Shown here in pieces: positions 3,982-50,813 of a stretch of 64,000 nucleotides of DNA (position 1 is the stretch's first letter; every line of letters starts with the position of its first letter). The position numbers and the translations under genes are program-made. The stretch lies in the IMG/VR virus record IMGVR_UViG_3300043418_000072, positions 186,001-250,000 of that record; one strand, written 5' to 3'. The notes below the pieces were generated by a model that saw only the letters and a program-made list of their open reading frames with translations, was not told the origin of the DNA and ran no database searches.

Positions 3982-4563
3982 TTATTCTTTCTTTACTGTA
4001 GATACTGTTGCATCAAGCTCTTTGAACTCTCGCTCTGCTCGGGACATTGCACCTCGTGCTGCACGATCTCGTTCCTTAGTGCGGGCAATTACGTTAGCTT
4101 CGCCCATTGGGAGCGCAACCAACACATAAGCTCGGAAACGGCCTTGGCTTTCAATCACCTTAATCTCCCGGATTTCAGTACCAGTTACGTCAACGTCCGG
4201 GCACATGCTTTTAATGGCTGTGGTGTTGATTGCGTTGCTGGTGCTTTCAGTGTCTACCCGGAACACCTTTGTTTGGCTGCGCACTGTACCACCTGCTGCC
4301 ATACAAATTTGTCGGAATGCGTTGGTTTCCGCAATGTCCTTGGCCATGTTAAAGTCACCTGAAATTGCAGTACCCGACGCATATACTGCATCAGTGCTCT
4401 TAGGTAACTTAGTCATCCACTCAGGAGCTTCGTTAATGGTTTGCTTTACCACACGTTCTTGACGCTCACGCACTTCTTCTGCGCGGCGCTCGTACGGGTC
4501 ACGGGTTGAGCTACAGCCTGTCATGATCAGGGCGATTGCGGCAATTGATAAAATACGTTTCAT
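3982..4563 (-). CDS. lipoprotein (LPP20-like)
   Basis: Start reassigned to MKRILSIAAIALIMTGC (lipobox, GAGG RBS); PEW...VYASG motif. Confidence 0.75.
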   Translation of the reverse strand: MKRILSIAAIALIMTGCSSTRDPYERRAEEVRERQERVVKQTINEAPEWMTKLPKSTDAVYASGTAISGDFNMAKDIAETNAFRQICMAAGGTVRSQTKVFRVDTESTSNAINTTAIKSMCPDVDVTGTEIREIKVIESQGRFRAYVLVALPMGEANVIARTKERDRAARGAMSRAEREFKELDATVSTVKKE

Positions 4564-4610
4564 TTCACACCTCTTGTTTGTTTCAATAACACAGTTTAAC
4601 ATAGATCCCA

Positions 4611-5060
4611 TTACCGGTCAACAATGGCTTCCCAACGGTTGACAACTGGCTTGGGGTTATTTCCACGATAGCATTTTGTACCTTGGCCGTTACCCGAAGG
4701 CAACTGCTCAGTTACTGTCACGCACCCTTGTGGACGGGCTACTGGAGCAGGACACCAATCATGGATCGTCCTGATCAAATTCTTAGCAATGTGTTCCTGT
4801 CTGCGATCAAACATGGCACGTTCTTCGTAGTACGTACCATCTGCTATTGACACCGCAGAAGCCACAGGGCTGGTTATTCTTAGTGCGTTTCTCCAACGGT
4901 CATTTACAGTGGGTATCTGACCTTGCAGAAATGCAATTTGTTCGTCTCGGTACTTGCAATCAATTTGAAAGCGATTCAAATCAACCACATCCATCTTGCT
5001 GGTAGTAGTTGTGCTACAACCAGCGAGGGCGAGTAAACTGATTGCAAGTACGAGTCTCAT
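4611..5060 (-). CDS. lipoprotein
   Basis: LLALAGC lipobox. Confidence 0.75.
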   Translation of the reverse strand: MRLVLAISLLALAGCSTTTTSKMDVVDLNRFQIDCKYRDEQIAFLQGQIPTVNDRWRNALRITSPVASAVSIADGTYYEERAMFDRRQEHIAKNLIRTIHDWCPAPVARPQGCVTVTEQLPSGNGQGTKCYRGNNPKPVVNRWEAIVDR

Positions 5061-5293
5061 TGGCAGTAGTGTTTTAAGCGTTCAATTTGAACATCAATAG
5101 TTTGATCATACTCAGACTGCGAAACAGTGCTGCCCGGGCCAAGAGGAAAACGTTTCCATTTAGTCAGCATCCTGATCCTGGCATCCCTGTTTGCACAATC
5201 TGGGTTAAAGTTAGTCACTGCACTATATGGAGGGCGATGCTGGCTAGCACAACCTGCTAATGCAGCGACTAAGATCAAAGCTAAGAGTTTCAA
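5057..5293 (-). CDS. lipoprotein, paralog-like to 4611..5060
   Basis: AALAGC lipobox; shared DC-x-x-RD-x-x-I-x-x-L motif. Confidence 0.7.
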   Translation of the reverse strand: MKLLALILVAALAGCASQHRPPYSAVTNFNPDCANRDARIRMLTKWKRFPLGPGSTVSQSEYDQTIDVQIERLKHYCQ

Positions 5294-6256: not shown

Positions 6257-6285
6257 ATTATACAACCAAAATCATTAATGGACAA
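6257..6285 (-). promoter_or_regulatory. sigma70 early promoter (repeat family copy 1)
   Basis: TTGTCC-17 bp-TATAAT. Confidence 0.75.
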
Positions 6286-6288
6286 CCA

Positions 6289-6606
6289 TTATTTGCAGTT
6301 TTTGTCTTTTGTTTTGTCGCAATCTTTGCTGCTATTGCTGCGCTGATGCCAGATGTTCCATGGCATATAGAAGTACGAAGGACTAGTTACAGTGCTAGGA
6401 CTTTCGGTAGTACTTTTGCTTGGAGAAGTAGTACTTTTTGCTGGTGCAGGAGCAGAACCTTTTGCTGGCGCTGCTGCATGACTTGAGCTTGCATGTCCAC
6501 CGGAACTAGCATGACCGCCGCCTCCATGTCCGCCTCCGCCACCACCTTTAGCTTGGGCAGTGCCGGTAATTGCAAGGACGATACAGAGTGCAATAATTTG
6601 TTTCAT
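6289..6606 (-). CDS. secreted Gly/Ser-rich hypothetical protein
   Basis: Signal peptide ending AQA, then GGGGGGHGGGGH. Confidence 0.7.
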   Translation of the reverse strand: MKQIIALCIVLAITGTAQAKGGGGGGHGGGGHASSGGHASSSHAAAPAKGSAPAPAKSTTSPSKSTTESPSTVTSPSYFYMPWNIWHQRSNSSKDCDKTKDKNCK

Positions 6607-6612
6607 GTGTGT

Positions 6613-6641
6613 ATTATATAACCAAAATCATTTATGGACAA
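6613..6641 (-). promoter_or_regulatory. sigma70 early promoter (copy 2), leaderless start
   Basis: TTGTCC-17-TATAAT; ATG lies 6 nt after the -10. Confidence 0.75.
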
Positions 6642-6645
6642 CCAT

Positions 6646-6668
6646 AAAAAAGCCCCAATTAAGGGGCT
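6646..6668 (-). terminator. intrinsic terminator after the phasin-like gene
   Basis: AGCCCC/GGGGCT stem followed by a T run on the minus strand. Confidence 0.8.
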
Positions 6669-6689
6669 AGTGAATAGTAGTACTTTGTA

Positions 6690-6959
6690 TTACTTTTTAA
6701 AGCTGAACTTCTCGCTGAAGTCTTTTGTGGCTTTGGCGAAGTCAAACTTGCTGGCTTCGGTAGCTGCTTTAACTGCTTCGCTAGTCAATTGAGCCACTGT
6801 GTCGGAACCGGCCTTAGCTGCCTTCTTTGTGTACTCAGCTTGTGCGTCAACAAAACCGTTTAGTGCCTTGGCGACTGCTTGGTTGTTTGCGAATACTGTG
6901 TTAACGAATTGTTTTTTACCGTTAGATACGGTGTCGATGAATGTGTCTGTAATAAACAT
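6690..6959 (-). CDS. phasin-like (PHA granule-associated) protein
   Basis: Start reassigned to MFITDTFIDTV (AGGAG RBS); Ala/Lys-rich amphipathic helices, FVDAQAEYTKKAAK; PhaR-like palindrome upstream. Confidence 0.55.
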   Translation of the reverse strand: MFITDTFIDTVSNGKKQFVNTVFANNQAVAKALNGFVDAQAEYTKKAAKAGSDTVAQLTSEAVKAATEASKFDFAKATKDFSEKFSFKK

Positions 6960-7032
6960 GTTGTTTCTCCTAAATAGACGAATACTTCTTTTACGGCCCG
7001 CCCTATGCAGCACCGTACAAAGTATTTAGTTA

Positions 7033-7061
7033 TTATAATGCTGCGCCGCAGCAAAAGTCAA
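7033..7061 (-). promoter_or_regulatory. sigma70 promoter with a PhaR-type operator TGCTGCG-C-CGCAGCA (7039-7053) in the spacer
   Basis: TTGACT-18-TATAAT on minus; perfect 7-bp inverted repeat between the boxes. Confidence 0.6.
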
Positions 7062-7127
7062 CAAATTTTCCTAGTGAGCTGTCACTAATTAAATACATAT
7101 ACATTGAAACATGTTTAAGGAGATCCA

Positions 7128-7427
7128 ATGTTTAAAGCAATCAAAGAATTCTTTTTTGGCAAGCCAACTCCGGCACCAAAAATTGAGTCACACGTAGAGG
7201 CAGTAAATGCAGCACCGTACAAAGTTGAACCACCAGTTCTAACTGAAGTAGTTACACCTGCAAAAAAGCCTGCTGCTAAAGTAAAGCCAGTTGCACCTAA
7301 GAAACCAGTTGCTAAAGCGCCTGCAAAAAAGCCTGCTGCAATCAAAGCACCTGCTAAGAAAGCATTGGCTAAAGCTGGCGATCCAAAGCCTGCTAAGAAA
7401 CCAGCCAAGAAACCTGCTAGCAAGTAA
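7128..7427 (+). CDS. histone H1-like / PhaM-PhaF-like PAKK-repeat protein
   Basis: Repeated PAKKP/PAKKA; N-terminal amphipathic MFKAIKEFFFGK; AAGGAG RBS; TAAATA upstream. Confidence 0.7.
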   Translation: MFKAIKEFFFGKPTPAPKIESHVEAVNAAPYKVEPPVLTEVVTPAKKPAAKVKPVAPKKPVAKAPAKKPAAIKAPAKKALAKAGDPKPAKKPAKKPASK

Positions 7428-8518
7428 TGTTTCTCAACGTCGGAGTTTTCCGCGATAATTCCGACACGGTTAGGTACCACCTAGATCATTTTGAAAAGCT
7501 CACTCCAAACGAATGGGCAGTTTACGATGATCTAGGTCACTACTTAAACAGTGGGCATCCACTGAACATCGCGTTTATTCACCTACCCTATCCATTCAAA
7601 TCTGACACCCAAGCTAAACTAGATGCAGTCTACGAGATCAGCGATTTTGTTTTTGTTATAGGCTCTGAGCTACATGCTAGCACACTAGAGTTTATACTAA
7701 AGAACGATCGTCCCAACATTGCCTACTATCTTTGCGGGTTTGTTGAGCAACCACTGGAACATGCAACTGTTCATCAATACTTTGATTGGTTTGAAACCAG
7801 TCGCTATTTTTATCGTGATTACTTGCCCGAGCTGTTGGGAAGAATCAATTATGTTCACAGTAAGGAATCGCACTTTGATATCCTACTAGGTCGAAAGAAG
7901 CCTCACCGTGATGCTGTTTACCAATTTGTAAAAGCGAACCTAAGGCAAGAAAATCGTGTGCTCACTTACTTTAACGAGCACCAAGTAGATTTTGCCACGG
8001 GTAGTGAACAATGGATATGGGAGGATCGCGGTATGCAGTTTATCAATGATCCTAAATGGACTGTGGACTTTGTTAAGTACTACGGTCACGCGATGAGTAT
8101 TAGCCAAGTTATACCCATTGATATCTACAATCGCACTGCCTACACTGTAGTAGCAGAAACCAACTATGATAATAGATACAGTTTTTACACTGAGAAAACT
8201 GCCAAGCCTATTATTGCTAGGCGCTTGTTTATTATGTTTGGCGGCCAGCATTACCTACGCAATTTACGCAAGTTGGGATTTCAAACGTTTGGTTCTGTTA
8301 TAGATGAAAGCTACGACTCTATTGCCGATGACCAACAACGTTGGGCCGCAGCATGTGATCAGATGAGTTGGTTATGCAATCAAGACCAAAATGCCATACT
8401 TCAAAAGGCAAGGCCAATCGTTGAACATAACTTTAACATTATGATGTCAACTGATTGGCACTTGTCTCTTGTGCGCGGTCTAGAATCTAAGATTGAAGAG
8501 CTACTGTCGCGAACTTAA
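7427..8518 (+). CDS. phage glycosyltransferase-like protein (paralog family member 1)
   Basis: C-terminal VVAET...TEKTAKPIIARRLF...LRKLGFQTF...IDESYD, shared with 14138 and 49325. Confidence 0.55.
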   Translation: MFLNVGVFRDNSDTVRYHLDHFEKLTPNEWAVYDDLGHYLNSGHPLNIAFIHLPYPFKSDTQAKLDAVYEISDFVFVIGSELHASTLEFILKNDRPNIAYYLCGFVEQPLEHATVHQYFDWFETSRYFYRDYLPELLGRINYVHSKESHFDILLGRKKPHRDAVYQFVKANLRQENRVLTYFNEHQVDFATGSEQWIWEDRGMQFINDPKWTVDFVKYYGHAMSISQVIPIDIYNRTAYTVVAETNYDNRYSFYTEKTAKPIIARRLFIMFGGQHYLRNLRKLGFQTFGSVIDESYDSIADDQQRWAAACDQMSWLCNQDQNAILQKARPIVEHNFNIMMSTDWHLSLVRGLESKIEELLSRT

Positions 8519-15260: not shown

Positions 15261-16418
15261 ATGAAAATTACAGACGTATTAGACGAAGCGGGTGCTGCCC
15301 CGATATATTATTTTGCCTACGGCATGTTAACAGATCCAGAATTGATGCCGGGTGCAGAATTTGTTGGACGTGCAGAGCTAAAGAATTTTGTCTTTGAGAT
15401 GTTTACCTATGCCAACGTATTCCCGTATCCTGGTGCCAGGGTAATCGGCAGCTTGTGGGCAATCGATAGACAGCTACTTGCTCAATTAGACCAAACTGAG
15501 GGATACCCAACCCTATACGATCGTAAAACGGTTCCGGTATTTGCCAATGGAGAGCGCCACGAAGCAGCGATTTACACAATGACTCCCGAGACTCGCGAGT
15601 ACATGCAAGGCACTGAACCAAACGATGCGTACATCGCTCGCATAGAGCGTGGGTATAACAATGCAGGAATTCCGTTACGTCAACTTGATGATGCACTAGA
15701 TGCCATTTACTCTGCACAGGATCTTGACGAGGGGTGGAAAGACTGGGCTGCTACAGGCGCCCTTGCTGCTGGAATGGCATTAGGTGGCGGAGCTGCTGAT
15801 GCTAAAGTTGCACCACATGCACAACCTAAAGCAACAGCCCAACACGTGGCTAAAGCTGCACACCCAGTTGCAGCTCAGTCCAAAACAGCACAACCAGAAA
15901 CCTACGGTGTTAGTATGAACACTGGTCCCGAACATACTCTACAACGTACTGCTCTTAGAGCCGGCATCAAAGGAGCAGAACTAGCACAATTCATGGCACA
16001 AACTCGCCACGAAAGTGCAGATTTTACACGTATGAAGGAGATTGGTGGAGCCAAGTACTTCCACAAGCGTTACGACCCCAAAGCCGCACCAGCTATGGCT
16101 AAGACCTTGGGCAATACACATGCAGGTGACGGAGTTAGGTATCACGGGCGCGGCTTTATTCAAATCACTGGACGAGACAACTATCGTATGGCCGGAAAAG
16201 CGTTGGGGTTGCCGTTAGAGCAAAAACCGGAGCTTGCTGCTAACCCAGAAATTGCTGCCAAGATTGCAGTGTGGTATTGGCAAACTCGCGTTAGACCTAA
16301 TGTACACAACTTCAATGACACTGCTACAGTCACTAAATATATTAACCCTGCGCTCAGAGGACTGCAAGATCGCTTGCACAACTTTAAAGAGTACACTGTA
16401 GCGATGAACATGCGATGA
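15261..16418 (+). CDS. gamma-glutamylcyclotransferase (AIG2-like) domain fused to a GH19 chitinase/lysozyme domain
   Basis: YYFAYG...LDQTEGYP..Y (GGCT); FMAQTRHES...YHGRGFIQITGRDNY...AVWYW...TKYIN (GH19). Confidence 0.88.
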   Translation: MKITDVLDEAGAAPIYYFAYGMLTDPELMPGAEFVGRAELKNFVFEMFTYANVFPYPGARVIGSLWAIDRQLLAQLDQTEGYPTLYDRKTVPVFANGERHEAAIYTMTPETREYMQGTEPNDAYIARIERGYNNAGIPLRQLDDALDAIYSAQDLDEGWKDWAATGALAAGMALGGGAADAKVAPHAQPKATAQHVAKAAHPVAAQSKTAQPETYGVSMNTGPEHTLQRTALRAGIKGAELAQFMAQTRHESADFTRMKEIGGAKYFHKRYDPKAAPAMAKTLGNTHAGDGVRYHGRGFIQITGRDNYRMAGKALGLPLEQKPELAANPEIAAKIAVWYWQTRVRPNVHNFNDTATVTKYINPALRGLQDRLHNFKEYTVAMNMR

Positions 16419-25888: not shown

Positions 25889-27091
25889 CTATTCTATAAA
25901 ATTAGGTGGGTCGTTATATTTAACCACTTTGTCAGTAATCTCTATCTTTTTAAAACCCTGCTTTTTAATTTCAGTTAGGGTGTACATATATGGTGTAAGA
26001 GTACGCTCTAAAATACTCTTTAGTCCACGGGCACCAACTTTTTGCTGCACTGCTAAGTCGGCTACTGCTTCAATGGCTTCCGGTGTAAACAGTAATTCCA
26101 CTTCGTCTGACGAGAAGTAAAACTTCATCTGTGCAAGCAAGTTGTTCTTAGGTTCAGTTAGAATCTTAACAAAGTCATCCTTGCTTAGTTCGTCAATTTG
26201 CACAGAGATTGGGAAACGTCCAGTAAACTCCGGTATCATCCCAAACTTTTGGAAATCGTCCGGGGTCACTTCTGTAACATCAATTTGGTCTTCATTGGCT
26301 GAGTTGAATCCAATACTGGTTCCTCGCTGCCTACGGTCGACAATCTTAGGTAGTCCAGCAAAGGCACCGCCGGCAATAAACAAGATCTTGCTGGTATCAA
26401 TTTCCACTTGATCCATTGCTGGATGCTTCTTGCCACCATTTACACTAACCTTGCACTTGGTACCTTCTACTAGCTTGAGTAGAGCTTGTTGTACTCCTTC
26501 GCCGCTTACGTCACGAGTTAGGCTAGCTGATTCACTTTTACGTGCAATTTTGTCTACTTCATCAAGGAAGATAATACCTTGCTCACAACGGGCAACATCG
26601 TATTCTGCTGCTGCTAGCAAGCCCGAGATGATGCTTTCAACATCATCCCCTACATATCCTGCTTCGGTTAGTGTAGTTGCATCTGCTACAACAAAGGGCA
26701 CGTTTAGATAACGTGCGATTGTTTTGGCTAGTAGTGTTTTACCTGAGCCAGTTGGGCCGTGAATTAGAATGTTTGACTTTTCTAGTTCAACTGAACTTTC
26801 GAAGAAGATGCGTTTGTAGTGATTAACCACTCCCACACTAATTGCAATTTTGGCAGCGTCTTGGCCGATAATGTATTCGTCTAAGTGCTGTTTGATTTTG
26901 ATTGGATCAAGTGCCTTGCCAATTTTCTTATCCTTGCGAATATGATCGTTAGCTTCTTTGTTAATGATGTTGCTACAAAGCGTGATACATTCATTACAAA
27001 TGCCCGCGTCGTTGGCTACAATTAACTTCTCAACTTCATTACGGCTTTTACCACAGAAGTTACAGTGGATCGGTTGAATGGTTTCGCTCAT
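25889..27091 (-). CDS. clpX: ClpX AAA+ unfoldase
   Basis: CNFCGK..ICNEC zinc-binding domain, [39 protein letters not shown] loop, GARGL. Confidence 0.97.
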
Positions 27092-50783: not shown

Positions 50784-50813
50784 ATAAGTCCTTTATGGAC
50801 AACTATAACAGAT

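Follow-up and report, generated by a model that had tools for sequence, protein, structure and literature searches.

Architecture of the Locus

We analyzed a window of 64,000 nucleotides (positions 186,001 to 250,000 of the IMG/VR record IMGVR_UViG_3300043418_000072), which belongs to the 354-kb genome of a freshwater jumbo phage. At 6690–7427 of the window, two small genes, here referred to as gene A and gene B, are divergently oriented, and the following features were identified in and around them:

6641–6668 (−): predicted intrinsic terminator of gene A, with a stem-loop at 6668–6651 followed by a T-run
6690–6959 (−): gene A, encoding a small Ala/Lys-rich protein of 89 aa, predicted to form three helices, from a large phage-only family
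6967–6971 (−): Shine-Dalgarno sequence AGGAG of gene A
6992–7017 (−): conserved 5′-UTR RNA hairpin of about 10–11 bp, with a bulged G and the loop AUAGG
7023–7028 (−): TAAATA box, a candidate T4-type late promoter for gene A
7032–7037 (−): −10 hexamer TATAAT
7038–7054 (no strand): PhaR-type operator, with the core palindrome at 7039–7053 and TGC-N3-GCA within it
7056–7061 (−): −35 hexamer TTGACT
7072–7087 (no strand): IR-1, a second conserved palindrome, TAGTGA-N4-TCACTA
7090–7095 (+): TAAATA late-type promoter box of gene B, 32 nt upstream of the ATG
7128–7427 (+): gene B, encoding a protein of 99 aa with an N-terminal amphipathic helix, an APYKVE motif and a disordered Lys/Ala/Pro (PAKK) tail

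The original prediction had described a perfect palindrome, TGCTGCG-C-CGCAGCA, in the promoter spacer of the 89-aa gene, a TAAATA late box just downstream of it and a divergent gene with PAKKP/PAKKA repeats, and each of these features was confirmed in the sequence. On the minus strand, a promoter scan found TTGACT at 7061–7056 and TATAAT at 7037–7032, which represents an 11/12 match with an 18-nt spacer, and the palindrome fills 15 of those 18 nt. The AGGAG motif lies 8 nt upstream of gene A, whose product contains 18% Ala and 15% Lys. The gene B product starts with MFKAIKEFFFGK and contains 24% Lys, 22% Ala and 18% Pro, with PAKKP/PAKKA units. The hairpin, IR-1 and the T4 type of the TAAATA late boxes were not noted in the original prediction.

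A perfect 7-N1-7 palindrome is not in itself rare, since 8 of them were found in the window, and a match with up to 2 mismatches is expected 0.39 times. The observation exceeds chance only through its uniqueness in the genome, its conservation and its identity to a known operator.

The Palindrome Matches Published PhaR Boxes and Is Conserved Upstream of Gene A Homologs

PhaR represses phasin promoters at TGC-N3-GCA-type sites and is titrated off by polyhydroxybutyrate (PHB) granules. On the minus strand the site reads TTGCTGCGGCGCAGCAT, and it matches the Cupriavidus necator consensus YTKNTGCRNYGCANMAR at 16 of 17 positions, including all positions reported as conserved. It also fits TG-N-TGC-N3-GCA, the palindromic core of the footprinted Herbaspirillum seropedicae PhbF motif TG[N]TGC[N]3GCAA, with the last base being G in the window and A in most relatives. 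Similarly, it contains the CTGC-N3-GCAG reported for R. sphaeroides and fits the EMSA-tested Sinorhizobium meliloti core YGCRNYGCR.

In order to examine whether the palindrome is a general promoter element of the phage, we searched the complete genome, and GYTGC-N3-GCARC occurred only once in 354 kb, which ruled out this possibility. However, the degenerate published consensus is itself loose, as 72 sites in the genome scored at least 15/17 compared to 32 in shuffles, with nearly all of them located in coding sequence.

Conservation of the palindrome upstream of homologs had been set beforehand as a test, and it was assessed here in 68 distinct upstream regions from related uncultured phages. 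Of these, 39 scored at least 15/17, compared to 10 of 637 control windows, and 48 carried TGC-N3-GCA or an N4-spaced variant, overlapping the −35 region or the spacer. About 10–20 of the 68 relatives lacked a recognizable box, so control by PhaR is not universal in the family. The box center was located 17–18 nt (29 loci) or 7–9 nt (16 loci) upstream of a −10. Information content dips at position 5 and at the center and is high at positions 2–4 and 7, in line with published PhaR boxes. The unpublished genome G061 (locus L149) was left out of every analysis.

The Same Box Precedes phaP and phaR in Polynucleobacter

Next, we searched for the potential source of the regulator. No PhaR was found in the phage, and therefore the regulator must come from the host. 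All 21 Polynucleobacter genomes searched have Phasin_2 genes, and 5 of 5 complete ones have PhaR, one of which was confirmed as TIGR01848 at 160.9 bits. Their phaP promoters read, for example, ATGTTGCAACGCAACAT, followed by 8 nt and TATAAT, that is, the same box at the same distance from the −10 as in the phage. The motif occurs 16–27 times per genome compared to 1–5 for the control, and it is located upstream of phaP genes and of phaR, twice upstream of phaR in two of the three genomes. The phage and host position frequency matrices correlate at r = 0.92.

Polynucleobacter is the likeliest host genus, although this assignment is an inference. GC content is 43.5% for the phage and 44.5% for Polynucleobacter loci, and one homolog-bearing contig is binned with a Polynucleobacter MAG. 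On the other hand, two homolog contigs are binned with a Haliscomenobacter MAG in which neither PhaR nor a phasin was found. A tblastn search of gene A against 50,697 cultured-phage records gave no match, so no cultured relative gives a host.

Gene A Is Covered by Freshwater Metatranscriptome Contigs

Freshwater metatranscriptome contigs cover gene A as a monocistronic RNA. A contig from an RNA library, at 100% identity, covers 6641–7009 at a depth of 112, thus ending at the predicted terminator, and contigs from three samples end at 7009–7011. Depth is zero over 7014–7114, which leaves the promoter gap uncovered, while another contig covers 7118–7537, including gene B. Whether the palindrome might act as a transcribed RNA structure was also considered, but this was rejected because RNA depth over it is zero and the conservation is of sequence, not of pairing.

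The family is large, with 106 close homologs, 310 loci in IMG/VR, 842 profile hits and 121 clusters at 50% identity. It is found in freshwater, estuary and wastewater samples and is transcribed in lake metatranscriptomes. The homologs all start with MF in the alignment, and a Shine-Dalgarno sequence is present in 68 of 68 distinct homolog loci.

Homology of the Gene A Product to Phasins Is Not Supported

The description of the 89-aa protein as phasin-like in the original prediction was not supported as homology. The protein scored 14.5 bits against the 24.9-bit cut-off of Phasin_2 (PF09361), and no NCBIfam phasin model matched at E ≤ 1. Phasin_2 was nonetheless the commonest Pfam hit among relatives (22 of 40 at E ≤ 1, best 1.3e-4), which is only a weak pointer to a phasin. 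An hhalign comparison against 37 phasin domains gave P = 0.012 (A1) and 0.047 (A2, an alignment), in a consistent register that is the same as that of the Pfam match, whereas no signal was obtained against Polynucleobacter phasins alone. Reversed sequences scored almost as well, averaging 6.4 bits compared to 8.2 for the true ones, and the converse search showed no difference.

The AF2 model consists of three helices at a mean pLDDT of 82.6, and the hydrophobic moment is 0.3–0.44 along the chain. The product is therefore predicted to be a small amphipathic α-helical protein, a feature which is not specific to phasins. Foldseek searches of this model against AFDB clusters, Swiss-Prot and PDB found only generic helical hairpins and no phasin, and a profile search of PDB sequences found nothing meaningful. 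The only named Atlas neighbor is a Phasin_2 cluster. A profile search of the large protein database listed only family members and no bridge to annotated phasins. Furthermore, the strongly conserved motifs of the protein (KKxFVNT, FVDAQxxYTK) look more like a specific interaction surface than a generic coat.

The Gene B Product Resembles PhaM and PhaF in Layout Only

PhaM (C. necator) and PhaF (P. putida) link granules to the nucleoid, and the original prediction had placed the PAKK-repeat protein alongside them. The gene B product shares with both a hydrophobic or amphipathic N-terminal part plus a C-terminal histone-like Lys/Ala/Pro repeat tail of the PAKKA or AAKP type, and PAKKA motifs occur in PhaM. 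However, no sequence relationship was detected, as no Pfam, PHROG or NCBIfam match was found, and the protein is much shorter, at 99 aa. Its N-terminus is only a 12-residue amphipathic helix. Of 66 loci, 38 have a gene B homolog, and the N-terminus is an amphipathic helix in about 27 and a TM-like helix in about 11, which fits a membrane anchor at least as well as a granule anchor. The Atlas model is disordered, at pLDDT 0.49. Gene B appears to be driven by a late TAAATA promoter and not by the putative PhaR-controlled one; a TAAATA box at 12–35 nt is conserved in nearly all loci that have a gene B homolog.

Among the families tried, no other PHB gene was found in the phage, and searches for two PHB depolymerase families were negative. 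The 363-aa neighbor (7427–8518) belongs to a phage-specific family with only a weak lead to glycosyltransferase family 10 and does not look PHB-related. The PHA-granule module put forward in the original prediction is therefore a hypothesis, for which the likeness to PhaM and PhaF is an analogy only.

Interpretation of the Locus

Taken as a whole, the interpretation in the original prediction, that the phage may sense host polyhydroxyalkanoate stores through host PhaR and remodel or tether granules, was partly supported: the evidence for a PhaR-type operator on a phage promoter is strong, while granule binding is an inference. The explanation that we favor, and which we consider somewhat more likely than not, is that gene A is a strongly transcribed, monocistronic gene of a distantly T4-related freshwater jumbo phage, whose sigma-70-type promoter carries one operator for the host repressor PhaR. 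In this view, free host PhaR would sit on the TGC-N3-GCA box in a cell without PHB and occlude RNA polymerase, with the box lying in the −35/−10 spacer in this phage and over the −35 in most relatives. In a cell that is making or holding PHB granules, PhaR would be sequestered on the polymer and the phage gene switched on, so that expression would follow the host's carbon store, as it does for the host's own phaP. The phage thus probably reads the carbon reserve of its host, most likely a PhaR-bearing Burkholderiales bacterium such as Polynucleobacter. The hairpin near the 5′ end of the mRNA probably stabilizes it or binds a regulator, and in this subclade the TAAATA late box may add late transcription. 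The gene A product would most plausibly act at the granule surface, as a phasin-like coat or by displacing or recruiting granule proteins, while the gene B product, with its hydrophobic N-terminus and histone-H1-like PAKK tail, may tether DNA to a hydrophobic surface, either granule or membrane. Our analysis establishes the anatomy of the locus, its conservation and uniqueness, the motif identity with published boxes and with host pha promoters, the absence of a phage PhaR and transcription in nature, whereas PhaR binding, PHB-dependent derepression, granule association and the identity of the host are inferred.

Alternatively, the operator may indeed be used by host PhaR although the protein has nothing to do with granules, with PhaR serving only as a read-out of the host's carbon state that times or doses an abundant phage protein of another function, such as a take-over factor, a nucleoid- or membrane-associated protein or a virion-associated protein. 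This reading is possible but less likely. It is in line with the unproven phasin homology, the conserved motifs atypical for phasins, the lack of other PHB genes among the families tried, and the fact that PhaR regulons extend well beyond PHB genes in S. meliloti; the very high RNA depth and the additional late box also resemble those of an abundant phage protein. By contrast, the promoter architecture copies that of host phaP specifically, Phasin_2 is the recurrent top Pfam hit, always in one register, and the size, helicity and amphipathicity of the protein fit a surface-active protein.

It is unlikely that the palindrome is the site of a different regulator, either a phage-encoded protein (possibly gene A's own product) or another host factor, and that its likeness to the PhaR box is coincidental. 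Uniqueness in the genome would be expected of a gene-specific autoregulatory operator, IR-1 represents a second gene-specific palindrome 20 nt away which is not a common host motif, some relatives carry the N4-spaced variant, and the published consensus is degenerate. However, all conserved positions of three independently determined PhaR boxes are matched, including the R-N-Y center and the T at position 7, the same sequence stands before phaP, and the same motif before phaR, in a candidate host genus, and gene A has no recognizable DNA-binding domain. An even less likely possibility is that the operator is an inert relic of a strong phaP promoter captured from a host and kept only because it is a good promoter, as its resemblance to a host phaP promoter might suggest. 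Across loci whose proteins are only 50–63% identical, the flanking intergenic sequence is scrambled, and yet the TGC/GCA triplets stay invariant and the center stays free; the box has also moved between the spacer and the −35 position while being retained.

Comparison with Known Systems and Significance

With regard to the phaP/phaR promoters under the PHB-responsive repressor PhaR (PhbF, AniA) in C. necator, H. seropedicae and S. meliloti, the phage promoter shares the operator sequence class (a TGC-N3-GCA palindrome with a single-base center and T/A at position 7), its placement over the −35/−10 and a small helical protein downstream, predicted as such in the phage. It differs in being located on a lytic-type jumbo-phage genome in which no PhaR was found, in having one box rather than the two or three usual in host phaP promoters, in that the downstream protein is not a demonstrable Phasin_2 member, and in the added 5′-UTR hairpin and IR-1, which were not seen in the host promoters read here. 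Phages are known to wire a few genes to host nutrient regulators, and phage genes carrying such operators include cyanophage auxiliary genes with upstream pho boxes and NtcA sites. There, as proposed here, a phage promoter is wired to a host sensor of nutritional state, but in the present case the sensor reports an intracellular storage polymer rather than an external nutrient, and the regulated gene is not a recognizable host-derived metabolic gene.

In the literature searched, no phage gene has been reported under the PHB-granule sensor PhaR, and no phage-encoded granule protein is described. If PhaR control is real, it gives a direct handle on how the carbon status of ubiquitous freshwater Burkholderiales shapes infection, and it would also supply a sequence-based host marker for an uncultured jumbo-phage clade. 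A more far-reaching possibility, which we regard as doubtful although compatible with the data, is that a whole clade of abundant freshwater jumbo phages senses the host's PHB reserve by borrowing PhaR and, in response, deploys its own granule-surface protein and, late in infection, a granule- or membrane-to-DNA tether, in order to take over the cell's carbon store for phage production. This would be the first viral system aimed at bacterial storage granules.

Additional Cis-Elements: Late Boxes, IR-1 and the 5′-UTR Hairpin

The hairpin and IR-1 add two undescribed cis-elements. IR-1 occurs once in the genome compared to 0 expected and is present in 46 of 68 loci, and it is not enriched in Polynucleobacter genomes, which argues against a common host motif. 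The TAAATA box of gene A, conserved in the subclade of the window, is plausible as a T4-type late promoter (TATAAATA): TAAATA occurs 87 times in the 100 nt upstream of genes on the sense strand, against 13.5 expected, and TAAATAC 38 times against 4.9. As in T4-type late promoters, TAAATA boxes without a −35 lie 12–35 nt upstream of many genes.

In the 5′-UTR hairpin, 95% of cells are paired, compared to 26–48% when the partners are slid, 8 of 11 pairs show compensatory changes, and RNAalifold independently found the same stem. The core is present in 54 of 68 loci. No Rfam family matched the hairpin, and the Rfam scan of the region found only a sub-threshold sRNA hit on the terminator. Candidate transcript starts are 7025, 7017 and 7010. 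The hairpin lies within about 8 nt of the predicted transcript start, similarly to stabilizing stem-loops at mRNA 5′ ends, but its conserved loop (AUAGG) and bulged G, together with its occurrence at this gene only in the genome, suggest a specific ligand rather than a mere 5′ cap-like structure.

Genomic context and verification of the promoter region

The window is bases 186001-250000 of a single 354,098-bp IMG/VR virus record, which has a GC content of 43.5% and was rated 100% complete by CheckV. Its DnaB-type helicase is about 45% identical to those of Pseudomonas phage PA5oct, Agrobacterium phage Atu_ph07 and Sinorhizobium phage Phosso, and the phage is therefore a distant member of the T4-related jumbo phages with no close cultured relative. 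UvdE, ClpX-like, class I ribonucleotide reductase, primase and helicase proteins are also encoded in the window.

We first examined whether the elements listed in the original prediction, namely the palindrome, its promoter, the two divergent genes and a late box, could be confirmed. Every one of them was found where it had been placed. The elements of the region, including those identified in the present work, are the following:

6668-6651, intrinsic terminator of gene A
6690-6959 (-), gene A, encoding 89 aa (18% Ala, 15% Lys), with AGGAG 8 nt upstream; the AF2 model is three helices at pLDDT 82.6
6992-7017 (-), hairpin in the 5'-UTR of gene A
7028-7023, TAAATA box of gene A
7037-7032 (-), TATAAT
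7039-7053, palindrome TGCTGCG-C-CGCAGCA
7061-7056 (-), TTGACT
7072-7087, IR-1, TAGTGA-N4-TCACTA
7090-7095, TAAATA box of gene B
7128-7427 (+), gene B, encoding 99 aa, starting MFKAIKEFFFGK and ending in a Lys/Ala/Pro tail

TTGACT and TATAAT form an 11/12 sigma-70 match with an 18-nt spacer, which the palindrome nearly fills. A perfect 7-N1-7 palindrome is not remarkable in itself, since the window contains eight of them.

The palindrome is gene-specific, conserved and matches the PhaR box

In contrast to the palindrome as such, the pattern GYTGC-N3-GCARC occurs once in the 354-kb genome, and it is therefore not a general promoter element of the phage. In order to examine its conservation, we collected homologs of gene A, which belongs to a large phage-only family with 106 close homologs, 121 clusters at 50% identity, 842 profile hits and 310 loci in IMG/VR, many of them on contigs of 260-366 kb. 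Locus L149, from the unpublished genome G061, was excluded from every analysis.

In the 150 nt upstream of 68 distinct homolog loci, 39 had a 17-mer scoring at least 15/17 against the published PhaR consensus, compared to only 10 of 637 control windows from the same loci. A strict TGC-N3-GCA was carried by 41 loci and an N4 variant by 7. The consensus was ttATGtTGCagtGCAaCATaa, in which the TGC/GCA triplets are invariant, the centre is free, and the positions beside the centre are R and Y. The box centre sits 17-18 nt (29 loci) or 7-9 nt (16 loci) upstream of a -10 hexamer, so that it lies over the -35 or in the spacer. Since the proteins at these loci are only 50-63% identical and the surrounding intergenic sequence is scrambled, the box is under selection. 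In the relatives numbered L015, L018, L037, L054, L055, L075, L078 and L082, the box has a 4-base centre (TGCG-RY-CGCA) instead of 3, with L054 carrying two such copies, which might reflect a host PhaR with a different spacing preference or a different regulator.

We next compared the site with experimentally defined PhaR boxes. For C. necator, the deduced palindrome is YTKNTGCRNYGCANMAR, with positions 1-4 and 7 from the centre nearly invariant (PMC12849132), and the window site, read on the minus strand, matches it at 16 of 17 positions, including all of those. For H. seropedicae PhbF, the footprinted motif is TG[N]TGC[N]3GCAA, and the same paper cites CTGC-N3-GCAG for R. sphaeroides (PMC3206438). 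For S. meliloti, the EMSA-tested core is YGCRNYGCR with AT-rich arms (PMC12542648).

PhaR and phasin promoters in candidate hosts

No PhaR N-terminal domain was found in the phage. A scan of 185,579 species genomes found relatives of gene A only on contigs of two MAG bins, one Polynucleobacter and one Haliscomenobacter, which are probably mis-binned phage contigs. Neither a phasin nor PhaR was found in the Haliscomenobacter bin. This contrasted with Polynucleobacter, in which all 21 genomes searched have 1-5 Phasin_2 genes and 5 of 5 complete ones have PhaR, one of these being confirmed as TIGR01848 at 160.9 bits and lying beside phaB.

Polynucleobacter phaP promoters read, for example, ATGTTGCAACGCAACAT, then 8 nt, then TATAAT, or ATGTTGCATCGCAACAT, then 8 nt, then TACAAT, which is the sequence and geometry seen in most of the phage loci. 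In three complete genomes, the pattern TGYTGCRNYGCARCA (at most 1 mismatch) occurred 16-27 times, compared to 1-5 times for the reversed control. These sites include those upstream of phaP genes, and one or two upstream of each phaR (two in two of the three genomes), as expected of an autoregulated PhaR regulon. The phage and host position matrices correlated at r = 0.92, although both site sets were picked with the same consensus. GC content was 44.5% in 145 kb of Polynucleobacter loci compared to 43.5% in the phage. The assignment of Polynucleobacter as host remains an inference, as any PhaR-bearing freshwater Burkholderiales bacterium would fit the operator.

Transcription in environmental samples

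Sequencing runs holding near-identical sequence came from freshwater, estuary and wastewater samples. In one lake metatranscriptome, a contig identical to the window covered 6641-7009 at word depth 112, the highest in the 3 kb examined, while another covered 7118-7537 at depth 66, spanning gene B and the start of the next gene. Depth was zero over 7014-7114, which holds the two promoters and both palindromes, and this argues that the signal is RNA and not carried-over DNA. Contigs of related phages from two other samples covered only gene A, and in all three samples the contigs ended at 7009-7011. The 3' end at 6641 fits the predicted terminator. The upstream ends, however, fall inside the 5'-UTR hairpin, and could reflect a transcript start near 7017 (expected from the TAAATA box), loss of terminal bases from a start near 7025 (expected from TATAAT), processing, or an assembly effect. 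The contig over gene B begins at 7118 directly joined to Illumina adapter sequence, at a position 2 nt before GGAG of the Shine-Dalgarno sequence, which could be a dominant RNA 5' end (processing near the Shine-Dalgarno sequence) or a library artefact.

Additional conserved cis-elements

Three further elements, one of them a class of boxes found genome-wide, emerged from this analysis. The 5'-UTR hairpin, as tested on the alignment, has 11 base pairs (10 form in the window sequence, and RNAalifold predicts those 10), a bulged G and the loop AUAGG. On 41 sequences, 95% of cells paired, compared to 26-48% when the partners were slid, and 8 of 11 pairs showed compensatory changes; the closing pair, for example, is C-G in 23 sequences, G-C in 9 and A-U in 7. 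The same stem was found independently by RNAalifold. No Rfam family matched it, it occurs only here in the genome, and nothing like it was seen in the host phaP leaders that we read. Most likely, it stabilises the mRNA or binds a regulator.

The second element, the palindrome IR-1, lies about 20 nt upstream of the -35 of gene A and about 55 nt upstream of the presumed start. It is unique in the 354-kb genome, present in 46 of 68 loci and not enriched in Polynucleobacter genomes. Loci without it carry a different inverted repeat (GGCAAAA...TTTTGCC).

Finally, TAAATA boxes occurred 87 times in the 100 nt upstream of genes on the sense strand, compared to 13.5 expected, and TAAATA(C) boxes lie upstream of about 80 genes, typically 4-35 nt from the ATG with no -35. 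This fits T4-type late promoters, in keeping with the relatives of the phage. Gene A has such a box in this subclade, and that of gene B is conserved in nearly all loci that have a gene B homolog. Gene B is therefore probably a late gene, not co-regulated through the PhaR box.

Relationship of gene A to phasins

The original prediction described gene A as phasin-like, for which the evidence is weak. Phasin_2 scored 14.5 bits (E = 0.041) against a cut-off of 24.9 bits. It was the commonest Pfam hit among relatives (22 of 40 at E <= 1 with a best of 1.3e-4, and 7 of 114 at E <= 0.01), and a Phasin_2 cluster was the only named neighbour in the protein Atlas, at 0.85, which is a lead only. hhalign against 37 phasin domains gave P = 0.012 and 0.047, in the same register as the Pfam match, but against Polynucleobacter phasins alone it gave nothing. 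A phasin HMM scored the family at a mean of 8.2 bits and the reversed sequences at 6.4 bits, and the family HMM did not separate phasins from reversed phasins at all, so most of the signal is composition and helical periodicity. NCBIfam phasin models did not match, and Foldseek searches of three libraries returned only generic helical hairpins. We therefore do not file gene A as a Phasin_2 member, and the case that it works at the granule rests on its promoter and on its general physical character.

Gene B and other candidate PHB functions

A gene B homolog lies divergent to gene A in 38 of 66 loci. The family shares an APYKVE motif and a Lys/Ala/Pro tail, which is predicted to be disordered, and the N-terminus is an amphipathic helix in about 27 loci and a TM-like helix in about 11. 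Some homologs (at loci L021, L029, L032, L037, L052, L054 and L055) carry, between the motif and the tail, an inserted Cys/His-containing segment, CGCGRSxTGxCVGLHxLTxEEW, which may be a small metal-binding module. No family model matched gene B. PhaM has a hydrophobic N-terminus and PAKKA motifs that tie granules to the nucleoid, and PhaF has an amphipathic N-terminal helix and a histone-like tail (PMC9049629). The resemblance is one of layout only, and a tether from membrane to DNA fits equally well.

With regard to other PHB genes, searches of the phage for PhaR and for two PHB depolymerase families found none. The 363-aa neighbour (7427-8518, +) is translationally coupled to gene B (its ATG overlaps the stop codon), and its homologs are the divergent neighbour of gene A in loci that lack gene B. 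It is a phage-specific family with only a weak lead to glycosyltransferase family 10, and in other phages it is fused to methyltransferase or epimerase domains.

Proposed regulatory model

We propose that host PhaR represses the sigma-70 promoter of gene A in cells without PHB and is titrated away by granules in cells that hold PHB, so that an abundant small helical phage protein would be made in proportion to the host's carbon store. The presence of the box, its uniqueness and conservation, its match to published PhaR boxes and to Polynucleobacter phaP promoters, and the transcription of gene A come directly from the sequence data, whereas binding by PhaR, PHB-dependent derepression, the identity of the host and any action on granules are inferred. 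We consider the operator part probable, and the statement as a whole somewhat more likely than not. That the protein, and gene B, act on granules is plausible but remains a tentative inference. The interpretation in the original prediction, a PHA-granule module with a PhaR-type operator, was thus partly supported, in its operator but not in phasin homology.

Among the alternatives, PhaR control of a protein unrelated to granules is possible although less likely. It is unlikely that the site belongs to a different regulator and that its likeness to the PhaR box is coincidental, and very unlikely that it is an inert captured promoter. The wiring of phage genes to host nutrient regulators is already known. 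In the literature searched we found no phage gene reported under PhaR and no phage-encoded phasin, and a tblastn search of 50,697 cultured-phage records gave no match to gene A.

Other features of the window

Two near-identical promoter blocks of about 30 nt (ATGGTTGTCCATwAATGATTTTGGTTrTATAAT; TTGTCC-N17-TATAAT), at 6257-6289 and 6613-6645 on the minus strand, precede the two genes downstream of gene A. They contain an ATGG-N4-CCAT inverted repeat, and a partial third copy lies near 50806. At 6289-6606 (-), a 105-aa protein has a signal peptide (MKQIIALCIVLAITGTAQA) followed by Gly/His/Ser/Ala low-complexity sequence; no family match was found for it, and it is transcribed in the metatranscriptome at depth about 28-44. 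At 3982-5293 (-), three consecutive small ORFs start with lipoprotein-like signal sequences that end in a Cys (…LIMTGCSS, …LALAGCST, …AALAGCAS), and may be a cluster of phage lipoproteins, such as spanin or superinfection-exclusion candidates. Lastly, the ORF at 15261-16418 (+) fuses a gamma-glutamyl cyclotransferase-like domain to a class I chitinase-like (GH19) domain and is a likely lysin, and that at 25889-27091 (-) is a ClpX-like AAA+ ATPase with the C4 zinc finger.
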